Below are positions 4,792 through 55,090 of a stretch of DNA of 64,000 nucleotides, one piece after another. The stretch is taken from IMG/VR virus record IMGVR_UViG_3300035183_000733, positions 1-64,000 of that record; one strand, given 5' to 3'. Below the pieces are notes generated by a model, which ran no database searches, was not told the origin of the DNA, and worked only from the letters and a program-made list of their open reading frames with translations. A program made the translations under genes and the position numbers. The stretch's first letter is position 1. The number at the start of each line of letters is the position of its first letter.

Positions 4792-5580
4792 GACGGCGAC
4801 GAAATGAAGGTGCACGCTAAGAAGGTGCACGTCGCGCAGAAGGAGGACGAGTCCGTCAAGGCGTTCAACGACGCAGGACCCATGAAGATAGCGAACGGGT
4901 GGATGCTGTACCTCGACGAGGATAAGCAGATGCCGGTTGGTTCCGCCTTCATCAACATCAACACCAACGGCGCGCTCGCGCTGAGGGAGGTTGAGATAGC
5001 GAAGGGGATGCACAACAAGGGCATCGGTACCAAGTTCATGGAGCAACTGTGTAAGGCAGCGGACGACCATGGCTGGAAGATAGTGCTGACGCCGGACACA
5101 TACAAGGGCTCCGCAATGGGCAGGCTCAAGGAGTTCTACAAAAGGTTCGGGTTTGTTGACAACAAGGGGCGCAATAAGGACTGGTCCGTGCGGGAGACGA
5201 TGTACAGGGACGCCGGATCACTGGAGGAGAAGCTGGCGGTCGTGCCGCCGGACATAAGGAAGAAGCGCGTTGAGCAGAACTCGAAGATAGCCAAGGAGCT
5301 CGGACTGCGATTCGAGGGGGACTACGTCCAGCTGTACCACGGGACGAGCAAGGCAAACCTTAGCAAGATATACAAGTCCGGCAAGTTCAAAAGCGGAACG
5401 TGGTTCGCCACAGATCTGGAGACCGCGCAGAAGTACGCGAAGGCCAATCACAACACGAGCGCGGTAGACACCGTGTGGGTGTACATGGGCTCTCTGGTGT
5501 ACAACGGTTACTTCTCGAGTCAGGAGGAACTGTACTTTGGCAACAACAGATATTCGCCGAAGGACATAATATATAAGTAG
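4756..5580 (+). CDS. GNAT acetyltransferase + ART-like domain fusion
   Basis: MNHLRKYNDF leader; KGIGTKFMEQL...FYKRFGF (GNAT); LYHGT...GTWFATDLETAQKYA (ART-like). Confidence 0.65.
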   Translation: MNHLRKYNDFADDGDEMKVHAKKVHVAQKEDESVKAFNDAGPMKIANGWMLYLDEDKQMPVGSAFININTNGALALREVEIAKGMHNKGIGTKFMEQLCKAADDHGWKIVLTPDTYKGSAMGRLKEFYKRFGFVDNKGRNKDWSVRETMYRDAGSLEEKLAVVPPDIRKKRVEQNSKIAKELGLRFEGDYVQLYHGTSKANLSKIYKSGKFKSGTWFATDLETAQKYAKANHNTSAVDTVWVYMGSLVYNGYFSSQEELYFGNNRYSPKDIIYK

Positions 5581-19876: not shown

Positions 19877-19951
19877 GTCTCGATAGTATAGCGGCAATTA
19901 TACAACGGTCTCTAAAACCGATAGACATGGGTTCGAATCCCATTCGAGGCA
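19877..19951 (+). tRNA. amber suppressor tRNA(CUA)
   Basis: GTCTCGA/TCGAGGC acceptor; CGGT-CT-CTA-AA-ACCG. Confidence 0.9.
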
Positions 19952-20017
19952 CTTTTTTATAGTTTGGTGTCACAGGGAAAAAGAAGCAGAATTAAGAAAT
20001 AAATTAAAACAAAAGCC

Positions 20018-24105: not shown

Positions 24106-24241
24106 GGGGAAGTAGCCAAACGGTAAAGGCACAAGTCTGTTAAAACTTGCAACACGTACAAAACCATAACGTTACTCTACTTTCTATTGAAAGAACTAAA
24201 TGTTATTTCAGTATCTGGAGGTTCGAATCCTTCCTTCCCCA
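24106..24241 (+). ncRNA. Tyr-like tRNA scaffold with TTCAGTA module in the variable arm
   Basis: GGGGAAG/CTTCCCC acceptor, T arm, 8-nt anticodon loop CTGTTAAA, ~60-nt insert. Confidence 0.75.
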
Positions 24242-24368: not shown

Positions 24369-24507
24369 GGGGGAGTAGCTAAGTAAGTTACACACCTAAC
24401 GCTACTCTACTCTGGCAACAGAGAACTATGGCGATAGTTCAGTACAAGGTAAAGCAATTGTTTTGGATAACAATCAACCGCTGGTTCAACTCCAGCCTCC
24501 CCCACCA
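24369..24507 (+). ncRNA. tRNA scaffold (Gln-like) with TTCAGTA module in the D loop, encoded CCA
   Basis: GGGGGAG/CTCCCCC-ACCA; insert between AGCTAAGT and GGTAAAGC; distorted anticodon loop. Confidence 0.75.
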
Positions 24508-24530: not shown

Positions 24531-24725
24531 TTGGAAGTAACTCTTCCACAAGCAAAGAGAGAAACTTGGCGAGTTTTCAGTAAAATTAGCTCAACTGGAA
24601 GAGCGTTTGCCTACTAAGCAGAATGTTGCGGGTTCGACTTCCGTATTTTATACCTAACAATTCGCTTCCATATCTCTCCCACACTGCCGATTAAACGGCA
24701 CAGGAGACTAAGTGCACCTTCAGTA
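24531..24725 (+). ncRNA. Arg-like tRNA scaffold (anticodon ACT, 24580-24652) flanked by two TTCAGTA modules
   Basis: cloverleaf GTAAAAT/ATTTTAT; TTTGC-CT-ACT-AA-GCAGA; modules end at 24582 and 24725. Confidence 0.7.
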
Positions 24726-30298: not shown

Positions 30299-30475
30299 AT
30301 GGCAAAAACAGCTAAAAAGTCGACAGCAAAAAAAGCTAAGGCTACTAAAAAAGCAAAGCCTGCGGCTAAGAAAGCTGCGGTAAAGAAAACTGCTAAACCT
30401 GCGAAGAAGAGCACGCCGAAGGCGAAGGCTACTCCGAAGGCTGAGCCAGCGAAGAAGGAAACTTCACCTCGCTAA
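30299..30475 (+). CDS. 58-aa histone H1-like Lys/Ala/Pro-rich protein
   Basis: MAKTAKKSTAKKAKATKKAKPAAKKAAVKKTAKPAKK...; below ORF-track cutoff. Confidence 0.75.
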   Translation: MAKTAKKSTAKKAKATKKAKPAAKKAAVKKTAKPAKKSTPKAKATPKAEPAKKETSPR

Positions 30476-30650
30476 GCTCAAAAAGGTTGTGTGACGTCGC
30501 TGAGGGAACCCAGTGGACACAGAGGATTATCGTTCCATTCCAGATTGACCATCCTCAAGCAACACTCTCCTGAAAACTGGCGTACGCCCGGAGCAATCCG
30601 GGCCGCGGCCAAGCTGAGTCTCTTAGCCCCCTAAGGCTCAGCGGAACATT

Positions 30651-30777
30651 TGTCGAGTACAACTGGAGGTCAAGCGCTGATCAAAGGTGGTCCTGACGGG
30701 AAGCAGCAGTCTAATTAACTGCTGGAGCCCGATCAAACTCAGCAAAGGAAGTGCGGGTTCGAATCCCGCCTCGACGG
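30651..30777 (+). ncRNA. enlarged tRNA-like RNA (127 nt)
   Basis: TGTCGAG/CTCGACG acceptor, GCGGG-TTCGAAT-CCCGC T arm, multi-hairpin interior. Confidence 0.6.
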
Positions 30778-30958
30778 CAGTGCAAGAACTACGGTGAACA
30801 TGGGTTCGTCCCTCCGCCGTAGTTTTTAAAAATGAATTAAAAACCGAAACAATTCGGGATATATAGAGTATAAAGATAAGATTGTTCTACCTTATTCCCA
30901 ACAAATGGCAGATATACAAACAGGGACTTGCCAGGTAAAATAGTCGAACTAAAAAGAC

Positions 30959-31045
30959 ATGAAGAAGTATAACGCATATCAGCAGTATAATCAAAATCAG
31001 AATCAAAGTTCTGGGCTGAGCGTTATTTCCCCATTTGAAAAGTAG
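30959..31045 (+). CDS. attenuator leader peptide (Tyr/Asn/Gln-rich, 28 aa)
   Basis: MKKYNAYQQYNQNQNQSSGLSVISPFEK*. Confidence 0.85.
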   Translation: MKKYNAYQQYNQNQNQSSGLSVISPFEK

Positions 31046-31065
31046 TAACACACTATACAACGCGT

Positions 31066-31097
31066 AAAAGGCCCAGGACAAAATCCTGGGTCTTTTT
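31066..31097 (+). terminator. attenuator terminator of the Asn/Tyr/Gln tRNA operon
   Basis: GGCCCAGGA-CAAAA-TCCTGGGTC-TTTTT. Confidence 0.85.
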
Positions 31098-31101
31098 ACT
31101 T

Positions 31102-31190
31102 GGGTGGATTACCGTAGAGGCCGAACGGTCCAGACTGTTAATCTGGTGTGACGACGAGTCCCATCGCAGGTTCGAATCCTGCTCCGCCCG
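31102..31190 (+). tRNA. tRNA-Asn(GTT), long variable arm
   Basis: CCAGA-CT-GTT-AA-TCTGG, G73. Confidence 0.9.
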
Positions 31191-31226
31191 CAAAAATAGG
31201 TCCGACACGGGTAGATAGTAAATTAT

Positions 31227-31300
31227 GGACATGTAGCTCAGCAGGTCAGAGCAGCTCACTGTTAATGAGAAGGCCGGGGGTTCGAATCCCTCCTTGTCCG
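31227..31300 (+). tRNA. tRNA-Asn(GTT)
   Basis: cloverleaf. Confidence 0.95.
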
Positions 31301-31305
31301 CAAAT

Positions 31306-31380
31306 TTCTTGGGTGAGTCGGCTGTTTATTACGCGCGCAGCTGACGGTTGGAAGAAGAGGTTCGAGTCCTCCCTAAGGAG
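31306..31380 (+). ncRNA. D-armless tRNA-like element
   Basis: TTCTTGG/CTAAGGA, GAGG-TTCGAGT-CCTC, single GTCGGCTG/CAGCTGAC arm. Confidence 0.4.
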
Positions 31381-31390
31381 CAACAAATAT

Positions 31391-31480
31391 GGGTGTACGG
31401 TCGCGACGGTGGAGCGACCCCAGTCTGTAAAACTGGGACATTTAAAGAAACGCCGGGGGTTCGAAATCCCTCTACACCCA
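31391..31480 (+). tRNA. tRNA-Tyr(GTA)
   Basis: CCAGT-CT-GTA-AA-ACTGG; 8-nt T loop. Confidence 0.85.
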
Positions 31481-31485
31481 CACAT

Positions 31486-31567
31486 TGAGGAGCGCTAACG
31501 TTGGAGAGTTAGACCAGTCTGTAAAACTGGTGCTTCGGCTGAGTGGGTTCGAATCCCATCTCCTCAA
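31486..31567 (+). tRNA. tRNA-Tyr(GTA)
   Basis: cloverleaf with class II arm. Confidence 0.9.
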
Positions 31568-31574
31568 CTTAAAT

Positions 31575-31658
31575 TGTCCGATCGCCTAATGGCATGGCGC
31601 CGGGTTTTGGCCCCGGTGGGAAGTAATTCCTGTGTAGGTTCGACCCCTGCTCGGACAA
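31575..31658 (+). tRNA. tRNA-Gln(TTG), long variable arm
   Basis: CCGGG-TT-TTG-GC-CCCGG; GGGAA-GTAA-TTCCT arm. Confidence 0.9.
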
Positions 31659-31776
31659 CAAGACATCGACAGAGGTACTCGTCCGCAGACGTGTGGAAAA
31701 GTGTGTGCTTGCGACCATTAAAGTCTCTGTGTATCCCAATAGGTAGGAAGTAATTACTCTGAATGATTGGGAATAC

Positions 31777-31849
31777 TGTCCTGTAGTGTAACTGGCAACA
31801 CGTCGGGTTTTGGCCCCGAAGATTCCAGGTTCGAACCCTGGTGGGACAA
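31777..31849 (+). tRNA. tRNA-Gln(TTG)
   Basis: cloverleaf. Confidence 0.95.
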
Positions 31850-31887
31850 CAAAACGAAATTTATTTCGTATCTTTGAAGTATTATAT

Positions 31888-31960
31888 TGTCCTGTAGTTC
31901 AACTGGCAGAGCGCCTGATTCTGGATCAGGATGTTGGAGGTTCGAACCCTCCCGGGACAA
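31888..31960 (+). tRNA. tRNA-Gln(CTG)
   Basis: CCTGA-TT-CTG-GA-TCAGG. Confidence 0.95.
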
Positions 31961-32045
31961 CATGGGAATTAAGAACAACAATTAGTAGATAGATGCTGTA
32001 ATCCTAAATACACACAAAAGACTGGTGGCGGATATATTTGGAAAT

Positions 32046-33587
32046 ATGAGCATAATAACTAAAAAAGATTCGGGGAGGGTACGCGTACGTTTCGCGCCCT
32101 CCCCTACGGGACCCCTGCACTTAGGAGGGATCAGGACCGCATTATACAACTACCTGTTTGCTAAGAAGCACGGCGGCGATTTCATACTTCGCATCGAAGA
32201 TACCGATGCGATGAGGTTCGTGCCAGGCGCCGAAGAGTATATCATCGAAGCGCTGAAGTGGTGCGGTATATCGCCCAACGAAGGCGTTGGATTTGGCGAT
32301 GGTCCGCATGCACCATACAGGCAGTCGGAGAGAAAATCCATTTACAAGGAATACGCTATTAAGCTCGTGGAGCTCGGCCATGCATACTATGCGTTTGATA
32401 CTGGGGTATCGCTCGAAGAGAGACGCGCTGTCAACAAGAATTTTATGTATAACGGGGTGACTCGCGAGTCGCTGAGAAATAGTTTGACGTTGTCTTCTGA
32501 TGAGGTGAAATCGCTATTAGACTCGGAGACGCCGTACGTTATTCGGTTTAAGATACCGCGCAACACCGAGGTCGTGGTTAACGACATAGTTCGTGGTGCA
32601 ATAAGGGTCAACACGAACACGCTCGACGACAAGGTATTGTTCAAGAGTGACGGCATGCCTACTTACCACCTGGCGAACATTGTGGATGACCATCTCATGG
32701 GGATCACCCATGTAATCCGAGGTGAGGAGTGGTTGCCGTCTGCCCCGCTGCACGTTCTTTTGTACGAGGCTCTCGAGTGGGACGCCCCAGAGTTCTGCCA
32801 CCTTGCGTTGATACTTGGGCCTAACGGCAAGATGAGCAAGCGCGACATGGATTCTCTCGGGTTCCCAGTGTACCCGCTTGATTGGACAGATCCCAACACG
32901 GGGGAAAAGGCATCCGGATACCGTGAGATGGGATTCCTACCGGAAGCGTTCATCAACATGCTTGCGTTCATCGGATGGAACCCCGGCAACGGCAAGGAGA
33001 TAATGGGTCTCGACGAGATGGCAGAGGTGTTCGACCTCAGGAAGGTTCAGAGAGCTGGTGCCAAGTTCGACCCAAAGAAGGCGGAGTGGTACAGCAAGGA
33101 GTACATGAGGGTCGCTGACGACGCCGTGCTCGTCGAGAAGTGGATACCGGATCTGTGGGATAACGTTGATAAAAGCATTCCGCTTTCTCGCGTTTCTTCC
33201 GAGTACCGCACGAAGGTCGTCCACTTACTGAAGGAGAAGGTGGCATATCTCGGAAAGTTTTGGGAGAACGGCAGTTACTTCTTTATTGATCCAACCGATA
33301 TGTCGGTGCTCGATGAGTTGGCCGCGTCTAATGATAAGGTAACTCCGTTTATATTAAGCATGATGTCTAAGCTGATCGCCGATGATGTATTCGATATGAC
33401 TACCACTAAGGCTTGCTTTGATTCTGCCATAGCAGAATCCGGCATTGAGCCGCGCGAGGCCGGTAAGGCATTGCGTGCTGCAGTTTGCGGCAACAAAGTG
33501 GGGCCGCCGATGTTCGACATATTGGTGGTGCTCGGAAAGAACACCACGTTGTCTCGTCTTAAGAACTGCGCAACTGCACGAAGCTAA
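32046..33587 (+). CDS. gltX: glutamyl-tRNA synthetase
   Basis: RFAPSPTGPLHLGG, LRIEDTD, HVIRGEEW, KMSKR. Confidence 0.95.
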   Translation: MSIITKKDSGRVRVRFAPSPTGPLHLGGIRTALYNYLFAKKHGGDFILRIEDTDAMRFVPGAEEYIIEALKWCGISPNEGVGFGDGPHAPYRQSERKSIYKEYAIKLVELGHAYYAFDTGVSLEERRAVNKNFMYNGVTRESLRNSLTLSSDEVKSLLDSETPYVIRFKIPRNTEVVVNDIVRGAIRVNTNTLDDKVLFKSDGMPTYHLANIVDDHLMGITHVIRGEEWLPSAPLHVLLYEALEWDAPEFCHLALILGPNGKMSKRDMDSLGFPVYPLDWTDPNTGEKASGYREMGFLPEAFINMLAFIGWNPGNGKEIMGLDEMAEVFDLRKVQRAGAKFDPKKAEWYSKEYMRVADDAVLVEKWIPDLWDNVDKSIPLSRVSSEYRTKVVHLLKEKVAYLGKFWENGSYFFIDPTDMSVLDELAASNDKVTPFILSMMSKLIADDVFDMTTTKACFDSAIAESGIEPREAGKALRAAVCGNKVGPPMFDILVVLGKNTTLSRLKNCATARS

Positions 33588-47535: not shown

Positions 47536-47629
47536 GTGAGATAGGTCAAGGCTCACAAATAGGCGGATACCGTTGGTTGGTAAGTTGCGATTGCATCAAA
47601 CGTGGGTTCGAGCCCCACTCCGCCTACCA
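47536..47629 (+). ncRNA. hairpin + D-armless tRNA-like RNA, copy 1 (CCA end)
   Basis: GTGAG-ATAGGTCAAGG-CTCAC; AGGCGGA/TCCGCCT-ACCA; T arm. Confidence 0.7.
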
Positions 47630-48016
47630 TTTTTCCGTTTTATAAATTTGCATCATGCAAGAACGGATTGCCGAGATACGAGAACTGCTCTGGATATAGG
47701 TGCAGACTCGGTCGGCGCCTCGTCCGCGGCCGGCAGTTGCCATATACCGGTGACCGGGAATATTCGGACAGAATTGGTACCGTACCAGGAGTTTCTATTC
47801 AGGAGCTGCGCGGGTGGACGCCGAGCGTGCAAGCGCCGAACTGTCGTGGCCGATGGAAACATTGAATATCTCGGGACATATTTTTCAAGGCGTGGATAAC
47901 CAACTGGCTCCGTGACTTCGACAATTTCCTCCGTAGGAAGAGAATGTGCGAAATAACGTCTATCTTCGAGAAACGATTGTGGACGCGAACAGCGTGGAGA
48001 ACGCGCAAGATATAAG

Positions 48017-48085
48017 GGCCCGTAGCTCAGTTGGTTAGGTTCAACGAGGACTGGAACGCGTTTAAGCCTCGAGTCATCCGGCCCC
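48017..48085 (+). pseudogene. degenerate tRNA
   Basis: GGGCCCG-TAGCTCAGTTGGTTAG start; no valid anticodon or T arm. Confidence 0.4.
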
Positions 48086-48103
48086 AACCGTGGTGAGGCG
48101 CAC

Positions 48104-48221
48104 GATGGATAGGTCAAGGCCATCAAATTTCGGCAGGTACCGTTGGTGTCTTATACACACTATACACGTAGCTGGTATGTTGAGATCACATCAAACGTGG
48201 GTTCGAGTCCCACCCTGCCGA
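48104..48221 (+). ncRNA. hairpin + D-armless tRNA-like RNA, copy 2
   Basis: GATGG-ATAGGTCAAGG-CCATC; CGGCAGG/CCTGCCG; same conserved linkers as copy 1. Confidence 0.7.
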
Positions 48222-48672
48222 CTTTTCTAATTCGTTCTTTTTATTTAATTTTGCCATTATGTGCAGGCTCGAAGAAATCAGATCATCGCTAATGGCTGAG
48301 GCCAGGGCCCAGGTGGACCGCATGCGTATAAACGTGAGCGTTCCTACGATGGACGGAAGGCCGACGAGCATGTCACGCAGCTGTGTATCGCGAACGAGAA
48401 GAAGTACAAGCTGAACCAGACATTCGACTCCATAGCGCTTCCGAAGCTGACGGTGGACTCGGTTGTTAACCCGTTCGCAGAGGAGGCCAAGCAGATAAAT
48501 AATGCAGCAGGAGGGCGAGTTCTTCAAGGCGTGGATACACAGCTGGCTGCGGTTTCCTTACGCGAGTCAGGAATATCCGTGCAAAAATGAAGTGGTGGAT
48601 ATATTGGCGATCTTTTGCCCTAACACAAAATGGACAGAAGCAAAAAATAAAACGCGCAGATGATTATTTACC

Positions 48673-51928: not shown

Positions 51929-52177
51929 ATGAAAAACATCTTCGTAAGCAGCTTGCCTTTCAAGCTGACTGAGAGCGAGCTTCAGGCCGCTTTCGAAAAG
52001 CATGGTGAGGTAACCTCTGCCAAAATTATCAAGGACCGCGAAACCAACCGTAGCAAGGGATATGGGTTCGTAGAGATGTCTGACGATGAAGCCGCAACAA
52101 AGGCTATCGCAGCTCTTAACGGTTCTGAGTTTGGTGGTCGTTCCATCATCGTTAATGAGGCACGCCCGAAAGCATAA
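51929..52177 (+). CDS. RRM (RNP-1) RNA-binding protein
   Basis: IFVSSLP...RSKGYGFVEM...IVNEARP. Confidence 0.95.
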   Translation: MKNIFVSSLPFKLTESELQAAFEKHGEVTSAKIIKDRETNRSKGYGFVEMSDDEAATKAIAALNGSEFGGRSIIVNEARPKA

Positions 52178-52237
52178 TAAAGAAAAAACAAAGTAATTGC
52201 AGCCGAAACAAAACGCGCCGCAGATATATAATGTACG

Positions 52238-52318
52238 ATGAAGCAAATGATTAACATAGTTCGAATTAGCAGAAGGCGCTCAGACGTCCTGTCCGGATTA
52301 TGTCCAATCGTAAGCTGA
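52238..52318 (+). CDS. attenuator leader peptide (Ile/Arg, 26 aa)
   Basis: MKQMINIVRISRRRSDVLSGLCPIVS*. Confidence 0.85.
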   Translation: MKQMINIVRISRRRSDVLSGLCPIVS

Positions 52319-52344
52319 TAACATCGCTTTTCTTTTGGGACAAG

Positions 52345-52373
52345 AAACCCGGACCTAATCGTCCGGGTTTTTT
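52345..52373 (+). terminator. attenuator terminator of the Ile/Arg tRNA operon
   Basis: AAACCCGGAC-CTAATC-GTCCGGGTTT-TTT. Confidence 0.85.
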
Positions 52374-52382
52374 ATTTTACAC

Positions 52383-52456
52383 TGGTGTGTGACCAAGCTG
52401 GTTAAGGCACCTCCCTGATACGGAGGAAATCGTGGGTTCGACTCCCACCGCACCAA
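52383..52456 (+). tRNA. tRNA-Ile(GAT)
   Basis: CCTCC-CT-GAT-AC-GGAGG. Confidence 0.9.
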
Positions 52457-52461
52457 CAAAT

Positions 52462-52514
52462 AGTCGCTTAGCTCAGTTGGTTGGTCCCCAGTTCGAGTCT
52501 GGAAGCGACTACCA
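52462..52514 (+). ncRNA. 53-nt tRNA lacking the anticodon arm, CCA end
   Basis: AGTCGCT/AGCGACT-ACCA; GCTCAGTTGGTT joined directly to GGTC-T arm. Confidence 0.55.
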
Positions 52515-52580
52515 AGCCAGTCAATATGCGGGATGGCTTGCATTGTTACCGGACATTAAACCACCCGGGCGTTAGAGAAT

Positions 52581-52654
52581 GCACGCGTAGATCAACTGGA
52601 TAGATCACCTGACTACGGATCAGGAGGCTGGGGGTTCGAATCCTTTCGCGTGTA
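52581..52654 (+). tRNA. tRNA-Arg(ACG)
   Basis: cloverleaf. Confidence 0.95.
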
Positions 52655-52716
52655 CAAAATGCCTCAGTAGTCCCGTCGGCTTCGGAACCGATAGGGCAGA
52701 ATATGAATTAAGATAC

Positions 52717-52789
52717 GGTCCCGTAGCTCAGCGGATAGAGCATTTGCCTTCTAAGCAAAGGGTCACTGGTTCGAATCCAGTCGGGATCA
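52717..52789 (+). tRNA. tRNA-Arg(TCT)
   Basis: TTTGC-CT-TCT-AA-GCAAA. Confidence 0.95.
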
Positions 52790-52803
52790 CAAAAAGTAAA
52801 GTT

Positions 52804-53209
52804 ATGAAACTGAACATCAAAAAAAGTAAAACAGATCCCTAAGGAAGTCAATTCCAAGTTCGGAGTGTGCATATTCGGGGAACCGGATGCTGAGGTGTCC
52901 ACATGGATTGCAGCGCACGGTTTCGAGGTAGAAAAAGTTGGTCCTTATACGAATGTGTACATCGACAAGGACATCGATGAGGTGTTCGAGCCGGCGGGGA
53001 AGTTCCAGTACATGGACGGGTTCAGCCCGAACATGAACAAGCACCTGCACGTTGGCCATCTGTCCAACCTGGTGCTCGCAAAGGCGTTCCTCGGCATGGG
53101 TGTCACCAATGGCACGGTGGCCATACTTGGCGACACTCTCGAGGGCGATGTTTCCAAGGACGAGGCGCTCGATAAGTTCAAGTTGTACGAATGGTCGTCA
53201 ACCGTGTAG
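52804..53209 (+). pseudogene. argS: arginyl-tRNA synthetase N-terminal fragment (frameshifted, truncated)
   Basis: GPYTNVYI...DGFSPNMNKHLHVGHL HIGH region; ends ~53188. Confidence 0.7.
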
Positions 53210-53652
53210 GTCACCCTCGTGCCGAATTGTATGCGCTTGGCGGCCCACTCTTTAAACAGTATCACCGAGTACACTATAGCTGCGGCAACTATGGCTCCGA
53301 CAAACAGAGCTACCGTAACGGCTATCAGTCCGGGAAACCCGAGCGCCCAAGCGAACAACAGCTTGTCCCACCAACCAGCAAATGATGGTTCGGCAAAGAA
53401 CACATCCCAGATGCAGACACCGGTGGCGCAAGCTATCGGCATGGCGAATATGGACAGCAGCAGTGGGAACGGCTTGCTCATTTCGTCTCTCCGGCTTTTC
53501 ATGGTCAGGAAGTTTACGAGAACGCCGATCCACGATATTGGCAGTATTATCACGGCCGTTATACAGGCCATCACATACCAGAAGAGCGTTTCGGGTTTAA
53601 CGCCGAACGTCGCCTGGACGAACAGCGGCCAAAATTTTGATTCTATTTTCAT
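53186..53652 (-). CDS. multi-pass membrane protein (3' end collides with argS fragment)
   Basis: four hydrophobic helices. Confidence 0.6.
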
Positions 53653-53662
53653 TGTATTGTCA

Positions 53663-55090
53663 TTATGCGTACATCTCTTTCAAAGTTATGAATCGCCTGT
53701 GGTCGCCACAGGCGACGAGCAGGTCCTCCTTCTTGAACTCGGAAGGGTGGTGGTACCCGCAAGCGTTGGACATCTCGTGGATCTCTTTGCGCAGCTGCTT
53801 GATGTAGTTAGCTGCGCGGACGGATTTGAGCGTCGGGTCTATGCCGTTCTGCAGCCACTTGTTCTGTGTGGCCACGCCAGACGGACACCTGTTCGTGTGA
53901 CAAACCTGTGCCTGGATACAACCGATGGACATCAGCGCTTCCCTACCGACGTTAACCATATCACAGCCGAGCGCAAATGCCTTTATGGCATTGGCTGGAA
54001 GCCCGAGCTTGCCAGACCCGATGAACACTACGTTGTCGAGCGCCGGGTAAACTCTGAATATTTTTATGATGCTGTGTATTGCCTCGTTGAACGGCAGAGA
54101 CAGGTGGTCTGTGAATGATGGTGGTGCTGCACCAGTGCCGCCCTCGCCGCCGTCTATTGTGATGAAATCCGGGCCGAAACCGGACATGGCCATTTGCGTG
54201 GCGAGCTCCTCCCAGTCTTTTACGCTTCCAATCGCCGCCTTTATACCGACAGGCAGACCGGTTGCGTTTGCTATCTCTTCGATAAAGTTTATCATGCTTG
54301 TCACGTCCTTGAACGCGCTGTGAGTGCTTGGCGACACGGCGGCCTTGCCCATTTCGATGCCCCTGGCGTCTGCGATCTCCTGTGTCATCTTCGCGGCCGG
54401 CAGAATTCCTCCCTTGCCGGGCTTCGCGCCCTGGGACAGCTTTATCTCGATTGCCTTTATGCAGGGATTATCTTGCACGAGTTTCTTCAGCTTCTCGAGC
54501 GAGAACTTACCCTTCTCGTCGCACACTCCGAAGTATCCAGTTCCGAACTGGAACACCACGTCAGCCCCTTGCTTGTGATACACTGACAATCCGCCCTCCC
54601 CAGTGTTGTGGTAACAACCAGCGAGCTTAGCTCCGCCGTTAAGTGACTCTACAGCCTTTGCCGATAACGCGCCGAAGCTCATGCCAGATATGTTCACTAT
54701 AGAGTTTGGTGTGTATGGTTTTGCACGCTTGCCTTTGCCGAGCTGTTTCTTGCATGGCAGGTGACCGATGTTGTCGGAGTGCACCGGCATCATCTTGTGC
54801 TTTATGATTATGTGACCGGGTTCGTTGAAGTCCATGTCTGTACCGAACCCTGTGAGGTTGTTCTCATCCTTCGCCGAGGCATATATCCAAGCTCTGTGTC
54901 GCCTCGAGAATGGAAGCTCCTCTCTATTGTTGGCGATGAAGTACTGCCGGATTTCTGGACCTATCTTCTCGAACAGATAACGGATGTGTCCTATCACCGG
55001 GAAGTTGTGGGTTATTGCGTGTCTGTTTTGCATTATGTCGCGTATGGCAACTACGGCCAGGAAAGCGACGAACAATAATAAATATAACAT
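53663..55090 (-). CDS. FMN-binding glutamate synthase family protein
   Basis: SGMSFGALS, NTGEGG, EIKLSQGAKPGKGG, IDGGEGGTGAAP, CIQAQVCHTNRC. Confidence 0.92.
   Translation of the reverse strand: MLYLLLFVAFLAVVAIRDIMQNRHAITHNFPVIGHIRYLFEKIGPEIRQYFIANNREELPFSRRHRAWIYASAKDENNLTGFGTDMDFNEPGHIIIKHKMMPVHSDNIGHLPCKKQLGKGKRAKPYTPNSIVNISGMSFGALSAKAVESLNGGAKLAGCYHNTGEGGLSVYHKQGADVVFQFGTGYFGVCDEKGKFSLEKLKKLVQDNPCIKAIEIKLSQGAKPGKGGILPAAKMTQEIADARGIEMGKAAVSPSTHSAFKDVTSMINFIEEIANATGLPVGIKAAIGSVKDWEELATQMAMSGFGPDFITIDGGEGGTGAAPPSFTDHLSLPFNEAIHSIIKIFRVYPALDNVVFIGSGKLGLPANAIKAFALGCDMVNVGREALMSIGCIQAQVCHTNRCPSGVATQNKWLQNGIDPTLKSVRAANYIKQLRKEIHEMSNACGYHHPSEFKKEDLLVACGDHRRFITLKEMYA

Follow-up and report, generated by a model that had tools for sequence, protein, structure and literature searches.

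A putative leader-peptide attenuator preceding isoleucine and arginine tRNA genes in a huge phage

In a huge phage, a very short coding sequence and a transcription stop signal stand in front of a group of isoleucine and arginine tRNA genes, in an arrangement that would allow ribosomes slowed by a shortage of those tRNAs to permit transcription of the genes. The sequence features themselves are confirmed, and their interpretation as a ribosome-mediated (leader-peptide) transcription attenuator is supported by sequence analysis only. We analyzed a window of 64,000 nucleotides (positions 1 to 64,000 of IMG/VR record IMGVR_UViG_3300035183_000733), in which the unit, here termed U4, occupies positions 52205-52790. 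Full-text literature searches and a term search of the huge-phage paper (PMC7162821) recovered no description of attenuators before tRNA genes, although the literature searched was incomplete. The features of U4 and of the gene remnant that follows it are as follows.

52205-52232 (+), conserved promoter-like upstream boxes, GAAACA (52205-52210) and GATATATAAT (52223-52232), with the ATG following 5 nt later
52238-52318 (+), leader ORF of 26 codons (MKQMINIVRISRRRSDVLSGLCPIVS), stop codon TGA (52316-52318)
52250-52279 (+), regulatory codon block, in which ATT, CGA, ATT, AGA, AGG and CGC are read by the three downstream tRNAs
52247-52263 (+), region 1, which pairs with region 2 when no ribosome covers it
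52291-52311 (+), region 2, the switch segment, which pairs with region 1 or with the 5' arm of the terminator
52336-52354 (+), region 3, the 5' arm of the terminator
52361-52379 (+), region 4, the 3' arm of the terminator plus the U-run (T6 A T4), ending 4 nt before the tRNA
52383-52457 (+), tRNA-Ile (GAT)
52463-52514 (+), tRNA-like minihelix, probably a decayed tRNA gene
52581-52655 (+), tRNA-Arg (ACG)
52717-52790 (+), tRNA-Arg (TCT)
52804-53209 (+), remnant of a compact ArgRS-like gene

To determine whether these elements could be a product of chance, we compared them with the rest of the window. The first-pass annotation had proposed that an Ile/Arg leader precedes the three tRNAs, that its CGN and AGR codons match Arg(ACG) and Arg(TCT) and its ATT codons match Ile(GAT), and that a 9-nt segment pairs with a downstream segment with one mismatch; all of these statements hold. 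CGA and CGC are read by ACG, AGA and AGG by TCT, and ATT by GAT, so that six of ten consecutive leader codons are read by exactly these three tRNAs and all three anticodons are represented, whereas four codons within the block (AAC, ATA, GTT and AGC) are not read by the tRNAs of the operon. Only 3 of 325 small ORFs in the window, the leader included, have at least 6 of 10 consecutive codons read by these three tRNAs. The three tRNAs were called by both ARAGORN and Rfam, with scores of 58-72 bits against an Rfam threshold of 29.

The pairing proposed in the first-pass annotation joins GTCCGGATT (52291-52299) to AACCCGGAC (52346-52354), with 8 of 9 pairs formed, and AACCCGGAC is the 5' arm of a perfect, GC-rich 13-bp hairpin followed by T6-A-T4 (52342-52378, about -21 kcal/mol). 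A general promoter and terminator scan did not list this hairpin and was not relied upon, although folding and our own scan find it clearly. In the latter, only 13 such hairpin-plus-T-run sites lie on the + strand of the 64 kb, and 4 of them end within 10 nt of a tRNA cluster. The same hairpin is also the only terminator downstream of the gene for an RRM protein (51929-52177), so it has at least one ordinary role as well.

We next examined whether mutually exclusive structures could form. In the minimum-energy folds, 52254-52263 pairs with 52294-52303 and 52247-52252 with 52306-52311, giving a 1:2 hairpin that includes the regulatory codons (-22.4 kcal/mol, z -2.8, matched by 4 of 200 shuffles). 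Alternatively, 52291-52305 pairs with 52337-52354 to give a 2:3 antiterminator (-20.0 kcal/mol, z -2.6). The duplex statistics of U4 taken alone are moderate, with p = 0.015 against shuffles for the full arm but 0.067 for the 12-nt arm. In a ribosome-position scan, with the A site on codons 1-14, the 5' arm of the terminator was predicted to be sequestered (probability 0.73, about -20 kcal/mol), and this collapsed from codon 15 onward, just past the last Arg codon. Every anatomical requirement of a ribosome-mediated attenuator is thus fulfilled in U4.

To assess whether this design recurs, we searched the remainder of the window and identified three paralogous units, U1, U2 and U3, whose leaders mirror their own tRNAs.

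30846-31961 (+), U1: boxes, leader 30959-31045 (run of Tyr/Asn/Gln codons), terminator 31064-31099, then tRNAs Asn, Asn, Tyr, Tyr, Gln, Gln, Gln; a GluRS/GlnRS-type gene follows (32025-33587)
42632-43458 (+), U2: leader 42666-42743 (Val/Phe/Pro codons), terminator 42773-42803, then tRNAs Phe, Pro, Val, Val
46523-46763 (+), U3: leader 46558-46626 (His, Trp and ATA codons), terminator 46652-46686, then tRNA-Trp; tRNA-His x2 and tRNA(CAT) lie further downstream with no terminator in between

Own-operon scores were 10, 8, 7 and 6 of 10 codons for U1-U4, each at or near the maximum among the 325 small ORFs, and the coincidence of the end of the cognate run with the loss of the antiterminator was also seen in U1, U2 and U3. 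The two upstream boxes of U4 also stand before U1, U2 and U3, and a similar box stands before the leaders of relatives; their role as a promoter is inferred. In U2-U4 the -10-like box lies 5-8 nt before the ATG, suggesting that the 5' UTR is very short or absent. In U4, no Shine-Dalgarno sequence is present. U2 and U4 are paralogues that align along the whole unit, share an MK-MINIV leader start, and differ chiefly in the codon block. Other tRNA clusters in the window (19744, 24106 and 42100) show no leader-plus-terminator unit.

We then extended the analysis to distant huge phages. Of 92 tRNA clusters in the window plus 34 loci of these phages (designated here by L numbers), 14 have a hairpin and T-run 5-17 nt before the first tRNA, and all 14 carry a 22-37-codon ORF that mirrors the downstream tRNAs. 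Beyond the four units of the window, nine distinct units were scored in the distant phages, and more were seen by eye, including in GenBank records LR745206.1 and LR756504.1. Over the 13 distinct units, the match of leader codons to their own operon scored 104, compared with 45.4 +/- 7.5 when permuted, and 0 of 200,000 permutations reached the observed score. Of 64 operon anticodons, 58 are represented in their own leader, compared with 34.7 +/- 4.2 when permuted (p about 1e-5). Leaders also pair best with their own terminator arm (-158.7 against -112 +/- 8 kcal/mol, p below 5e-6), and the Fisher combination against shuffles gave 8e-11. However, the leader of U4 pairs as well with the similar terminator arm of U2 as with its own, and two of the 13 units (L040+9590 and L054+18099) show no convincing antiterminator by the simple duplex method. 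In the tRNA region of Cronobacter phage GAP32, used as a negative control, none of 16 clusters, comprising 22 tRNAs, has a terminator abutting the first tRNA.

No close relative of this contig exists in the collections searched, so U4 itself has no orthologue for covariation. A degenerate DNA pattern for the MK-MINIV leader start found only the source contig and unrelated genes, and the GluRS/GlnRS-type gene found only the source contig. The ArgRS-like fragment, searched against 5.8 billion proteins, found only itself plus fragments at about 50% identity, and its encoding contigs were the source contig only. A BLAST search of the region against 50,697 phage records gave only tRNA-length hits.

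Taken together, these results are best explained, with fairly high confidence, by a leader-peptide attenuator whose regulated products are the phage's own tRNA genes and, ancestrally, the cognate ArgRS. In the proposed mechanism, transcription starts at the conserved boxes and a ribosome begins to translate the leader. If Ile-tRNA(GAU), Arg-tRNA(ICG) and Arg-tRNA(UCU) are plentiful, the ribosome would run on to the stop codon and cover region 2, the 3:4 hairpin (52336-52379) would form, and RNA polymerase would terminate in the U-run 4-10 nt before tRNA-Ile. If any of these tRNAs is limiting, the ribosome would stall inside 52250-52279 and cover region 1, leaving region 2 free to pair with the 5' arm of the terminator, so that polymerase reads through into Ile-Arg-Arg and the tRNAs are then cut out of the transcript. 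With no translation at all, regions 1 and 2 would pair and termination would be the default. The result would be a homeostat, switched on by a shortage of the very tRNAs it encodes and switched off as they accumulate; leader translation, the transcription start, regulated readthrough and the cause of the shortage in nature are inferred.

Several alternative explanations were weighed against this one. An ordinary terminator ending the RRM-protein mRNA, together with a chance, untranslated ORF and tRNAs made by basal readthrough or from an unseen promoter, would fit the absence of any other terminator before 52342 and the fact that two other small ORFs reach the codon score of U4. This is nevertheless very unlikely, as it does not explain why four units in the window and nine elsewhere carry ORFs whose codons mirror the downstream tRNAs, why the 3' part of the ORF pairs specifically with its own terminator arm, or why the cognate run ends exactly at the antiterminator boundary; in addition, the 4-10 nt between the U-run and the tRNA leave no room for a promoter. 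A translation-independent RNA switch, such as a T-box-like leader that binds tRNA directly, or a functional small peptide, is equally improbable. The leader RNA is well structured (z -4.6 for 52178-52382), but Rfam searches found no T-box or other leader family at the gathering score over the window or at E up to 10 over 52150-52900, the correspondence lies in codons of one reading frame with several synonymous codons per amino acid, which only translation reads, and the peptides have no common sequence beyond their first residues.

It remains possible, though less likely, that the same switch reports amino-acid starvation through tRNA charging, coupling phage tRNA and aaRS output to the nutritional state of the host. 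A stalled ribosome cannot distinguish a missing tRNA from an uncharged one, and two operons include or included an aaRS (the GluRS/GlnRS-type gene after U1 and, in relatives, the ArgRS-like gene after U4); extra synthetase could relieve a charging defect. However, making more tRNA does not cure amino-acid starvation, and the leaders enumerate isoacceptors at the anticodon level, with both CGN and AGR codons for the two tRNA-Arg genes and CAA and CAG for the two tRNA-Gln types, which fits sensing of individual tRNA species better than sensing of an amino acid. It is doubtful that U4 is a decaying relic of a real family. The truncated argS, the tRNA reduced to a minihelix and the non-cognate codons in the block are consistent with erosion, whereas the start codon, the stop codon, both alternative helices and the terminator are intact, the three tRNAs score well above threshold, and all three anticodons are still sampled by the leader.

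The proposed element resembles known attenuators but differs in its output. The E. coli pheST attenuator (pheM leader) is a close parallel, as a leader peptide rich in the cognate codon and an intrinsic terminator appear to control an aminoacyl-tRNA synthetase according to the supply of cognate aminoacyl-tRNA; here, the first and main products are tRNA genes, the leader samples several tRNA species at once, the element belongs to a phage, and no sequence homology was found by Rfam leader search. The multivalent attenuators of amino-acid operons (thr, Thr+Ile; ilvGMEDA, Ile+Leu+Val; also trp, his and leu) seem to share the four-region logic, the position of the regulatory codons just upstream of region 2, the masking of region 2 by a finishing ribosome, and mixed-codon leaders. 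The best weak Rfam look-alike of the U4 hairpin is the Thr_leader terminator (21 bits against a threshold of 55), which is not a membership hit. In the present case the target is a set of tRNA genes rather than biosynthetic enzymes, so the feedback loop closes on the tRNA pool itself, and leaders list up to seven or eight different amino acids that mirror a whole tRNA array. T-box riboswitches of Gram-positive bacteria likewise appear to control aaRS and related genes through terminator/antiterminator choice in response to a specific tRNA, but by binding uncharged tRNA without translation, whereas the specificity here is written in translated codons. In mycobacteria, leaderless polycysteine short ORFs act as Cys-responsive attenuators (bioRxiv 10.1101/834739), similarly placing a short ORF enriched in one kind of codon at or near the 5' end of the transcript, although the organism, target and codon set differ and the leaderless status of the present units is only inferred.

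A broader hypothesis, which we consider slightly more likely than not, is that a clade of huge phages related to the Bacteroidetes-infecting 'Mahaphage' genomes uses a previously undescribed regulon of such attenuators as a codon-by-codon gauge of the tRNA supply of the infected cell. Each tRNA array, sometimes with its cognate synthetase, would be transcribed only when one of its own tRNAs runs short, which could arise when the host pool does not fit phage codon usage or when host tRNAs are degraded or cleaved during infection or by tRNA-targeting defence systems. This would be the first case of attenuation with tRNA genes as the output, and a built-in sensor and counter-measure for tRNA depletion. 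It bears on why large phages carry tRNA arrays and when they use them, since the arrays would be conditional rather than constitutively expressed. The leader also predicts the tRNA content of its operon, including tRNAs that software misses, which may help in annotating the many odd tRNAs of these genomes, and the compact (about 150 nt), modular units are of possible use in synthetic biology.

Finally, we examined the ArgRS-like gene, from which the first-pass annotation had inferred that the cognate synthetase appears co-regulated. This requires amendment, as the gene is not intact here: tblastn with relatives showed a 3'-truncated remnant of residues about 7-128 of about 392, with its first 12 codons (52804-52842) in one frame and the rest (homology 52823-53188) in another, the frames meeting at an A7 run (52819-52825). 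Co-regulation of the synthetase is therefore ancestral rather than current. The ORF 52865-53209 carries the class-I HIGH motif, as HVGH, which is invariant in eight relatives, but with the pieces searched separately it gave only marginal hits, all to ArgRS (Pfam E 0.18, NCBIfam E 0.015, PDB E 0.74). Its identity was settled through intact genes in relatives, which are unusually compact (389-396 aa against about 550-600 aa): the L004 copy matches Pfam tRNA-synt_1d at 25.9 bits against a cut-off of 23.3, and the AlphaFold model (pLDDT 85) has a predicted ArgRS fold, its top 19 PDB fold matches all being ArgRS (E 1e-16 to 1e-12). In L040, a leader with Arg/His/Thr codons precedes His, Arg(ACG), Arg(TCT) and Thr, followed 14 nt later by the intact ArgRS-like gene, and in L037 Arg(ACG), Arg(TCT), Ile(GAT) and Met precede it.

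The missing two thirds of argS are not elsewhere in the window. The in-frame open stretch after the argS TAG (53219-54118) has no ArgRS similarity and lies antisense to a glutamate-synthase-domain gene (Pfam 1.8e-76). The minihelix at 52463-52514, read directly from the sequence, comprises an acceptor stem, the start of the D arm, a T arm and ACCA with no anticodon arm, and was not called by ARAGORN, by its intron mode or by Rfam.

The window comprises the first 64 kb of the 373,759-bp viral contig IMGVR_UViG_3300035183_000733, and window coordinates equal contig coordinates. It carries 23 tRNA genes, all on the + strand (22 by Rfam), together with translation-related genes. The nearest public genomes holding the same ArgRS-like gene are the 634-636-kb 'uncultured phage' records LR745206.1 and LR756504.1. 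The paper on huge phages places all of its genomes above 634 kb in the Mahaphage clade and predicts Bacteroidetes hosts for them (PMC7162821).

To determine whether the proposed Ile/Arg attenuator is supported by the sequence, we first examined each element quoted in the first-pass annotation, and all of them were present. The unit, designated U4, contains the following features:

52238-52318, leader ORF encoding 26 residues
52250-52279, ten-codon run within the leader
52291-52299, GTCCGGATT
52346-52354, AACCCGGAC, the 5' arm of the terminator hairpin
52342-52378 (+), 13-bp hairpin followed by T6-A-T4, about -21 kcal/mol
52383 (+), start of tRNA-Ile(GAT)
52581 (+), start of tRNA-Arg(ACG)
52717 (+), start of tRNA-Arg(TCT)

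Under ordinary wobble rules, ATT is read by GAT, CGA and CGC by ACG (as inosine), and AGA and AGG by TCT. Six of the ten codons are therefore cognate, and each of the three tRNAs is sampled at least twice; the other four codons in the block are non-cognate, and the individual statistics of U4 are moderate. A tRNA-like minihelix lies between tRNA-Ile and tRNA-Arg (52463-52514), with a 7-bp acceptor stem, the start of a D arm, a T arm and a 3' ACCA, but no anticodon arm. It may be a decayed tRNA gene, which could explain some non-cognate codons in the leader, or a deliberate minihelix. Immediately upstream of the attenuator lies the gene for an 82-residue RRM-type RNA-binding protein (51929-52177; Pfam RRM_1 at 6e-24), which has no terminator of its own before the attenuator hairpin.

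We then assessed the alternative structures available to the leader RNA. The free leader is predicted to fold into a hairpin in which 52247-52263, inside the codon block, pairs with 52294-52311 (-22.4 kcal/mol, z -2.8). The same downstream segment, region 2, can instead pair with the terminator's 5' arm, 52291-52305 with 52337-52354 (-20 kcal/mol, z -2.6). To test the spacing of these elements, a ribosome was moved codon by codon along the leader, masking the RNA up to 13 nt past the A site. The terminator's 5' arm was predicted to be sequestered for A-site positions 1-14, and this was lost from codon 15, the codon after the last Arg codon, whereas a ribosome at the stop codon covered region 2 completely. 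This is the geometry of a classical four-region attenuator.

The decisive evidence is that the unit is one of a family. Three more units in the window share the upstream boxes (GAAACA, then GATATATA), a short ORF that starts MK, and a strong hairpin with a T-run abutting the first tRNA.

Table. Paralogous leader units in the window (unit; leader ORF; cognate codons in the leader; downstream tRNAs).
U1; 30959-31045; ten consecutive Tyr/Asn/Gln codons; Asn, Asn, Tyr, Tyr, Gln, Gln, Gln
U2; 42666-42743; Val/Phe/Pro; Phe, Pro, Val, Val
U3; 46558-46626; His, Trp and ATA; Trp, then His, His and a CAT-anticodon tRNA

No terminator lies between the tRNAs of U3. In each unit the cognate run ends where the antiterminator becomes occluded, and U2 and U4 align over the whole unit, differing mainly in the codon block. 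Only 13 hairpin-plus-T-run sites exist on the + strand of the window, and four of them belong to these units. The GATATATA(A) box also recurs before ordinary genes in the window (6704, 20519, 35843, 37693 on the - strand, and 24060) and before leaders in distant relatives (loci L037, L040, L047 and L054), and is thus probably a clade-wide promoter or 5'-UTR element. The -10-like box ends 5-8 nt before the ATG in U2-U4, which suggests a very short or absent 5' UTR. A Bacteroidetes-type TAnnTTTG motif, however, lies just upstream in some cases (46514-46521, about 24040, and in L023, L047 and L054), and the one upstream in U3 would give a UTR of about 30 nt instead.

To investigate whether this design extends beyond the genome, we retrieved 34 loci around the ArgRS-like gene of distant relatives (about 40-55% protein identity, much lower G+C) and screened every same-strand tRNA cluster. 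Of 92 clusters, 14 have a hairpin and T-run 5-17 nt before the first tRNA, and all 14 carry a 22-37-codon ORF whose residues mirror the downstream tRNAs. For example, a leader rich in T, Y, Q, K, P and G stands before Gln, Lys x3, Pro x2, Gly x2, Gln x3, Tyr x2, Thr x2, Gly; a leader rich in T, I, R, N and M stands before Thr, Asn, Thr, Arg, Arg, Ile, Met; and a leader rich in Q, P and D stands before Pro, Asp and Gln tRNAs. GenBank record LR745206.1 has a leader made of T, M, N, L, V, I, C and R before a 19-tRNA array, as well as a second P/Q/D leader, and LR756504.1 has the T/I/R/N/M unit. A further unit was seen by eye in locus L006. In L023, L037, L054 and L006, ORFs of 150-390 codons, some with HNH-like CxxC...H motifs, are inserted between tRNA sub-clusters inside attenuator-controlled arrays, and the leaders still list tRNAs that lie beyond these inserts.

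The correspondence was then quantified over 13 distinct units. The match of leaders to their own operons totalled 104, against 45.4 +/- 7.5 for permuted pairings, a score reached by none of 200,000 permutations. Of 64 operon anticodons, 58 have a codon in their own leader, against 34.7 +/- 4.2 when permuted. Taken over the units, the 3' parts of the leaders paired with their own terminator arms far better than with the other terminators (-158.7 against -112 +/- 8 kcal/mol, p below 5e-6); because this test compares real sequences with each other, it controls for base composition. Against shuffles, the Fisher-combined p was 8e-11, although two of the 13 units lack a clear antiterminator by our simple method, and U4 itself has no close orthologue in the collections searched. 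As a control, the tRNA region of Cronobacter phage GAP32 showed no such terminator in 16 clusters.

We next examined the proposal in the first-pass annotation that the operon ends in an ArgRS-like gene, so that the cognate synthetase appears co-regulated. The ORF at 52865-53209 on its own gave only marginal hits, all of them to ArgRS. Relatives encode an intact protein of 389-396 residues with invariant HVGH, which passes the Pfam ArgRS catalytic-domain threshold and whose predicted structure (pLDDT 85, pTM 0.87) has ArgRS chains as its 19 best PDB matches. In the window, by contrast, homology covers only residues about 7-128 (52823-53188); the first 12 codons (52804-52842) are in a different frame, the frames meet at an A7 run, and the remaining two thirds are absent from the window. 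Beyond 53190 the sequence is antisense to a hydrophobic ORF and to a glutamate-synthase-domain gene on the other strand. The hydrophobic ORF, of 235 codons (52945-53652, - strand), runs antisense into the argS remnant and was not called as a gene by JGI. A 299-codon open frame (53219-54118, + strand) continues in phase after the argS TAG stop, antisense to the glutamate-synthase-domain gene, and is most likely a shadow ORF. Together they mark the rearrangement that truncated argS, which is a remnant here. In L040 and L037, however, the intact gene begins 14 nt after tRNA clusters that hold the same Arg(ACG)-Arg(TCT) pair; L037 also has Ile(GAT), and both clusters sit behind an Arg-rich leader. 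In the window, a GluRS/GlnRS-type synthetase gene (32025-33587; Pfam tRNA-synt_1c at 1e-90, with a GluRS-type anticodon-binding domain) lies directly after the three tRNA-Gln genes of U1, behind the Tyr/Asn/Gln leader, and may encode a Gln-tRNA-directed GluRS. The idea that the cognate synthetase belongs to the regulated unit therefore holds for the family, and held ancestrally for this locus.

The most likely mechanism, inferred from sequence without experimental data, is that a ribosome translating the leader reports the supply of the aminoacyl-tRNAs that the operon itself provides. With ample supply, the ribosome would reach the stop codon, the terminator would form and the tRNA genes would stay silent; a shortage of any one tRNA would stall the ribosome in the block, the antiterminator would form, and the operon would be transcribed and the tRNAs then excised, giving self-limiting, on-demand expression. 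The natural trigger may be codon-usage mismatch, loss of host tRNAs during infection, tRNA-targeting defence or amino-acid starvation, alternatives that sequence alone does not separate, but the anticodon-level listing favours sensing of individual tRNA species.

The device appears to work like the classical attenuators and meets every sequence-level criterion of that class. It appears to resemble the thr and ilv leaders in being multivalent, and pheST in controlling the translation apparatus; it is not a T-box. Three things appear to be new: the output is tRNA genes, the leader acts as a table of contents of a whole tRNA array, and the setting is a clade of huge phages. No prior description was found in the huge-phage paper (PMC7162821) or in the literature searched, the coverage of which was incomplete.

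Two tRNAs with anticodon CTA (amber suppressors; 19877-19952 and 42187-42258) sit in clusters that have no attenuator. TAG stops were noted at 5580, 14038, 21544, 55782, 31045 and 53209; only 4 of 39 long ORFs end in TAG, each with a backup stop 1-8 codons later, and the U1 leader ends TAG-TAA. This suggests stage-specific TAG readthrough or recoding elsewhere in the 374-kb genome. At 31102-31659, 43088-43174, 47316-47401, 24106-24241 and about 24370-24506, tRNAs with the same anticodon come in pairs, one of normal length (72-77 nt) and one of 83-91 nt (Asn, Tyr, Gln, Val, His), and one Rfam tRNA hit spans 136 nt with an insert of about 60 nt. Relatives show the same habit (L006 and L023), so insert- or intron-bearing tRNAs seem to be a clade feature. 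One tRNA (24580-24654) is called as Ser with the unusual anticodon ACT.

Between a lysine/alanine-rich small ORF (30301-30475) and the U1 boxes lies a G+C-rich stretch that looks structured (30500-30830), with two T-arm-like GGTTCGAATCC motifs; it has no Rfam match at E up to 1 and is not called as tRNA or tmRNA. Downstream of the His tRNAs, at about 47500-47640 and about 48020-48230, there are two similar copies of a composite element that ends in a tRNA-like acceptor/T-arm module, neither of which is called by the tRNA finders.
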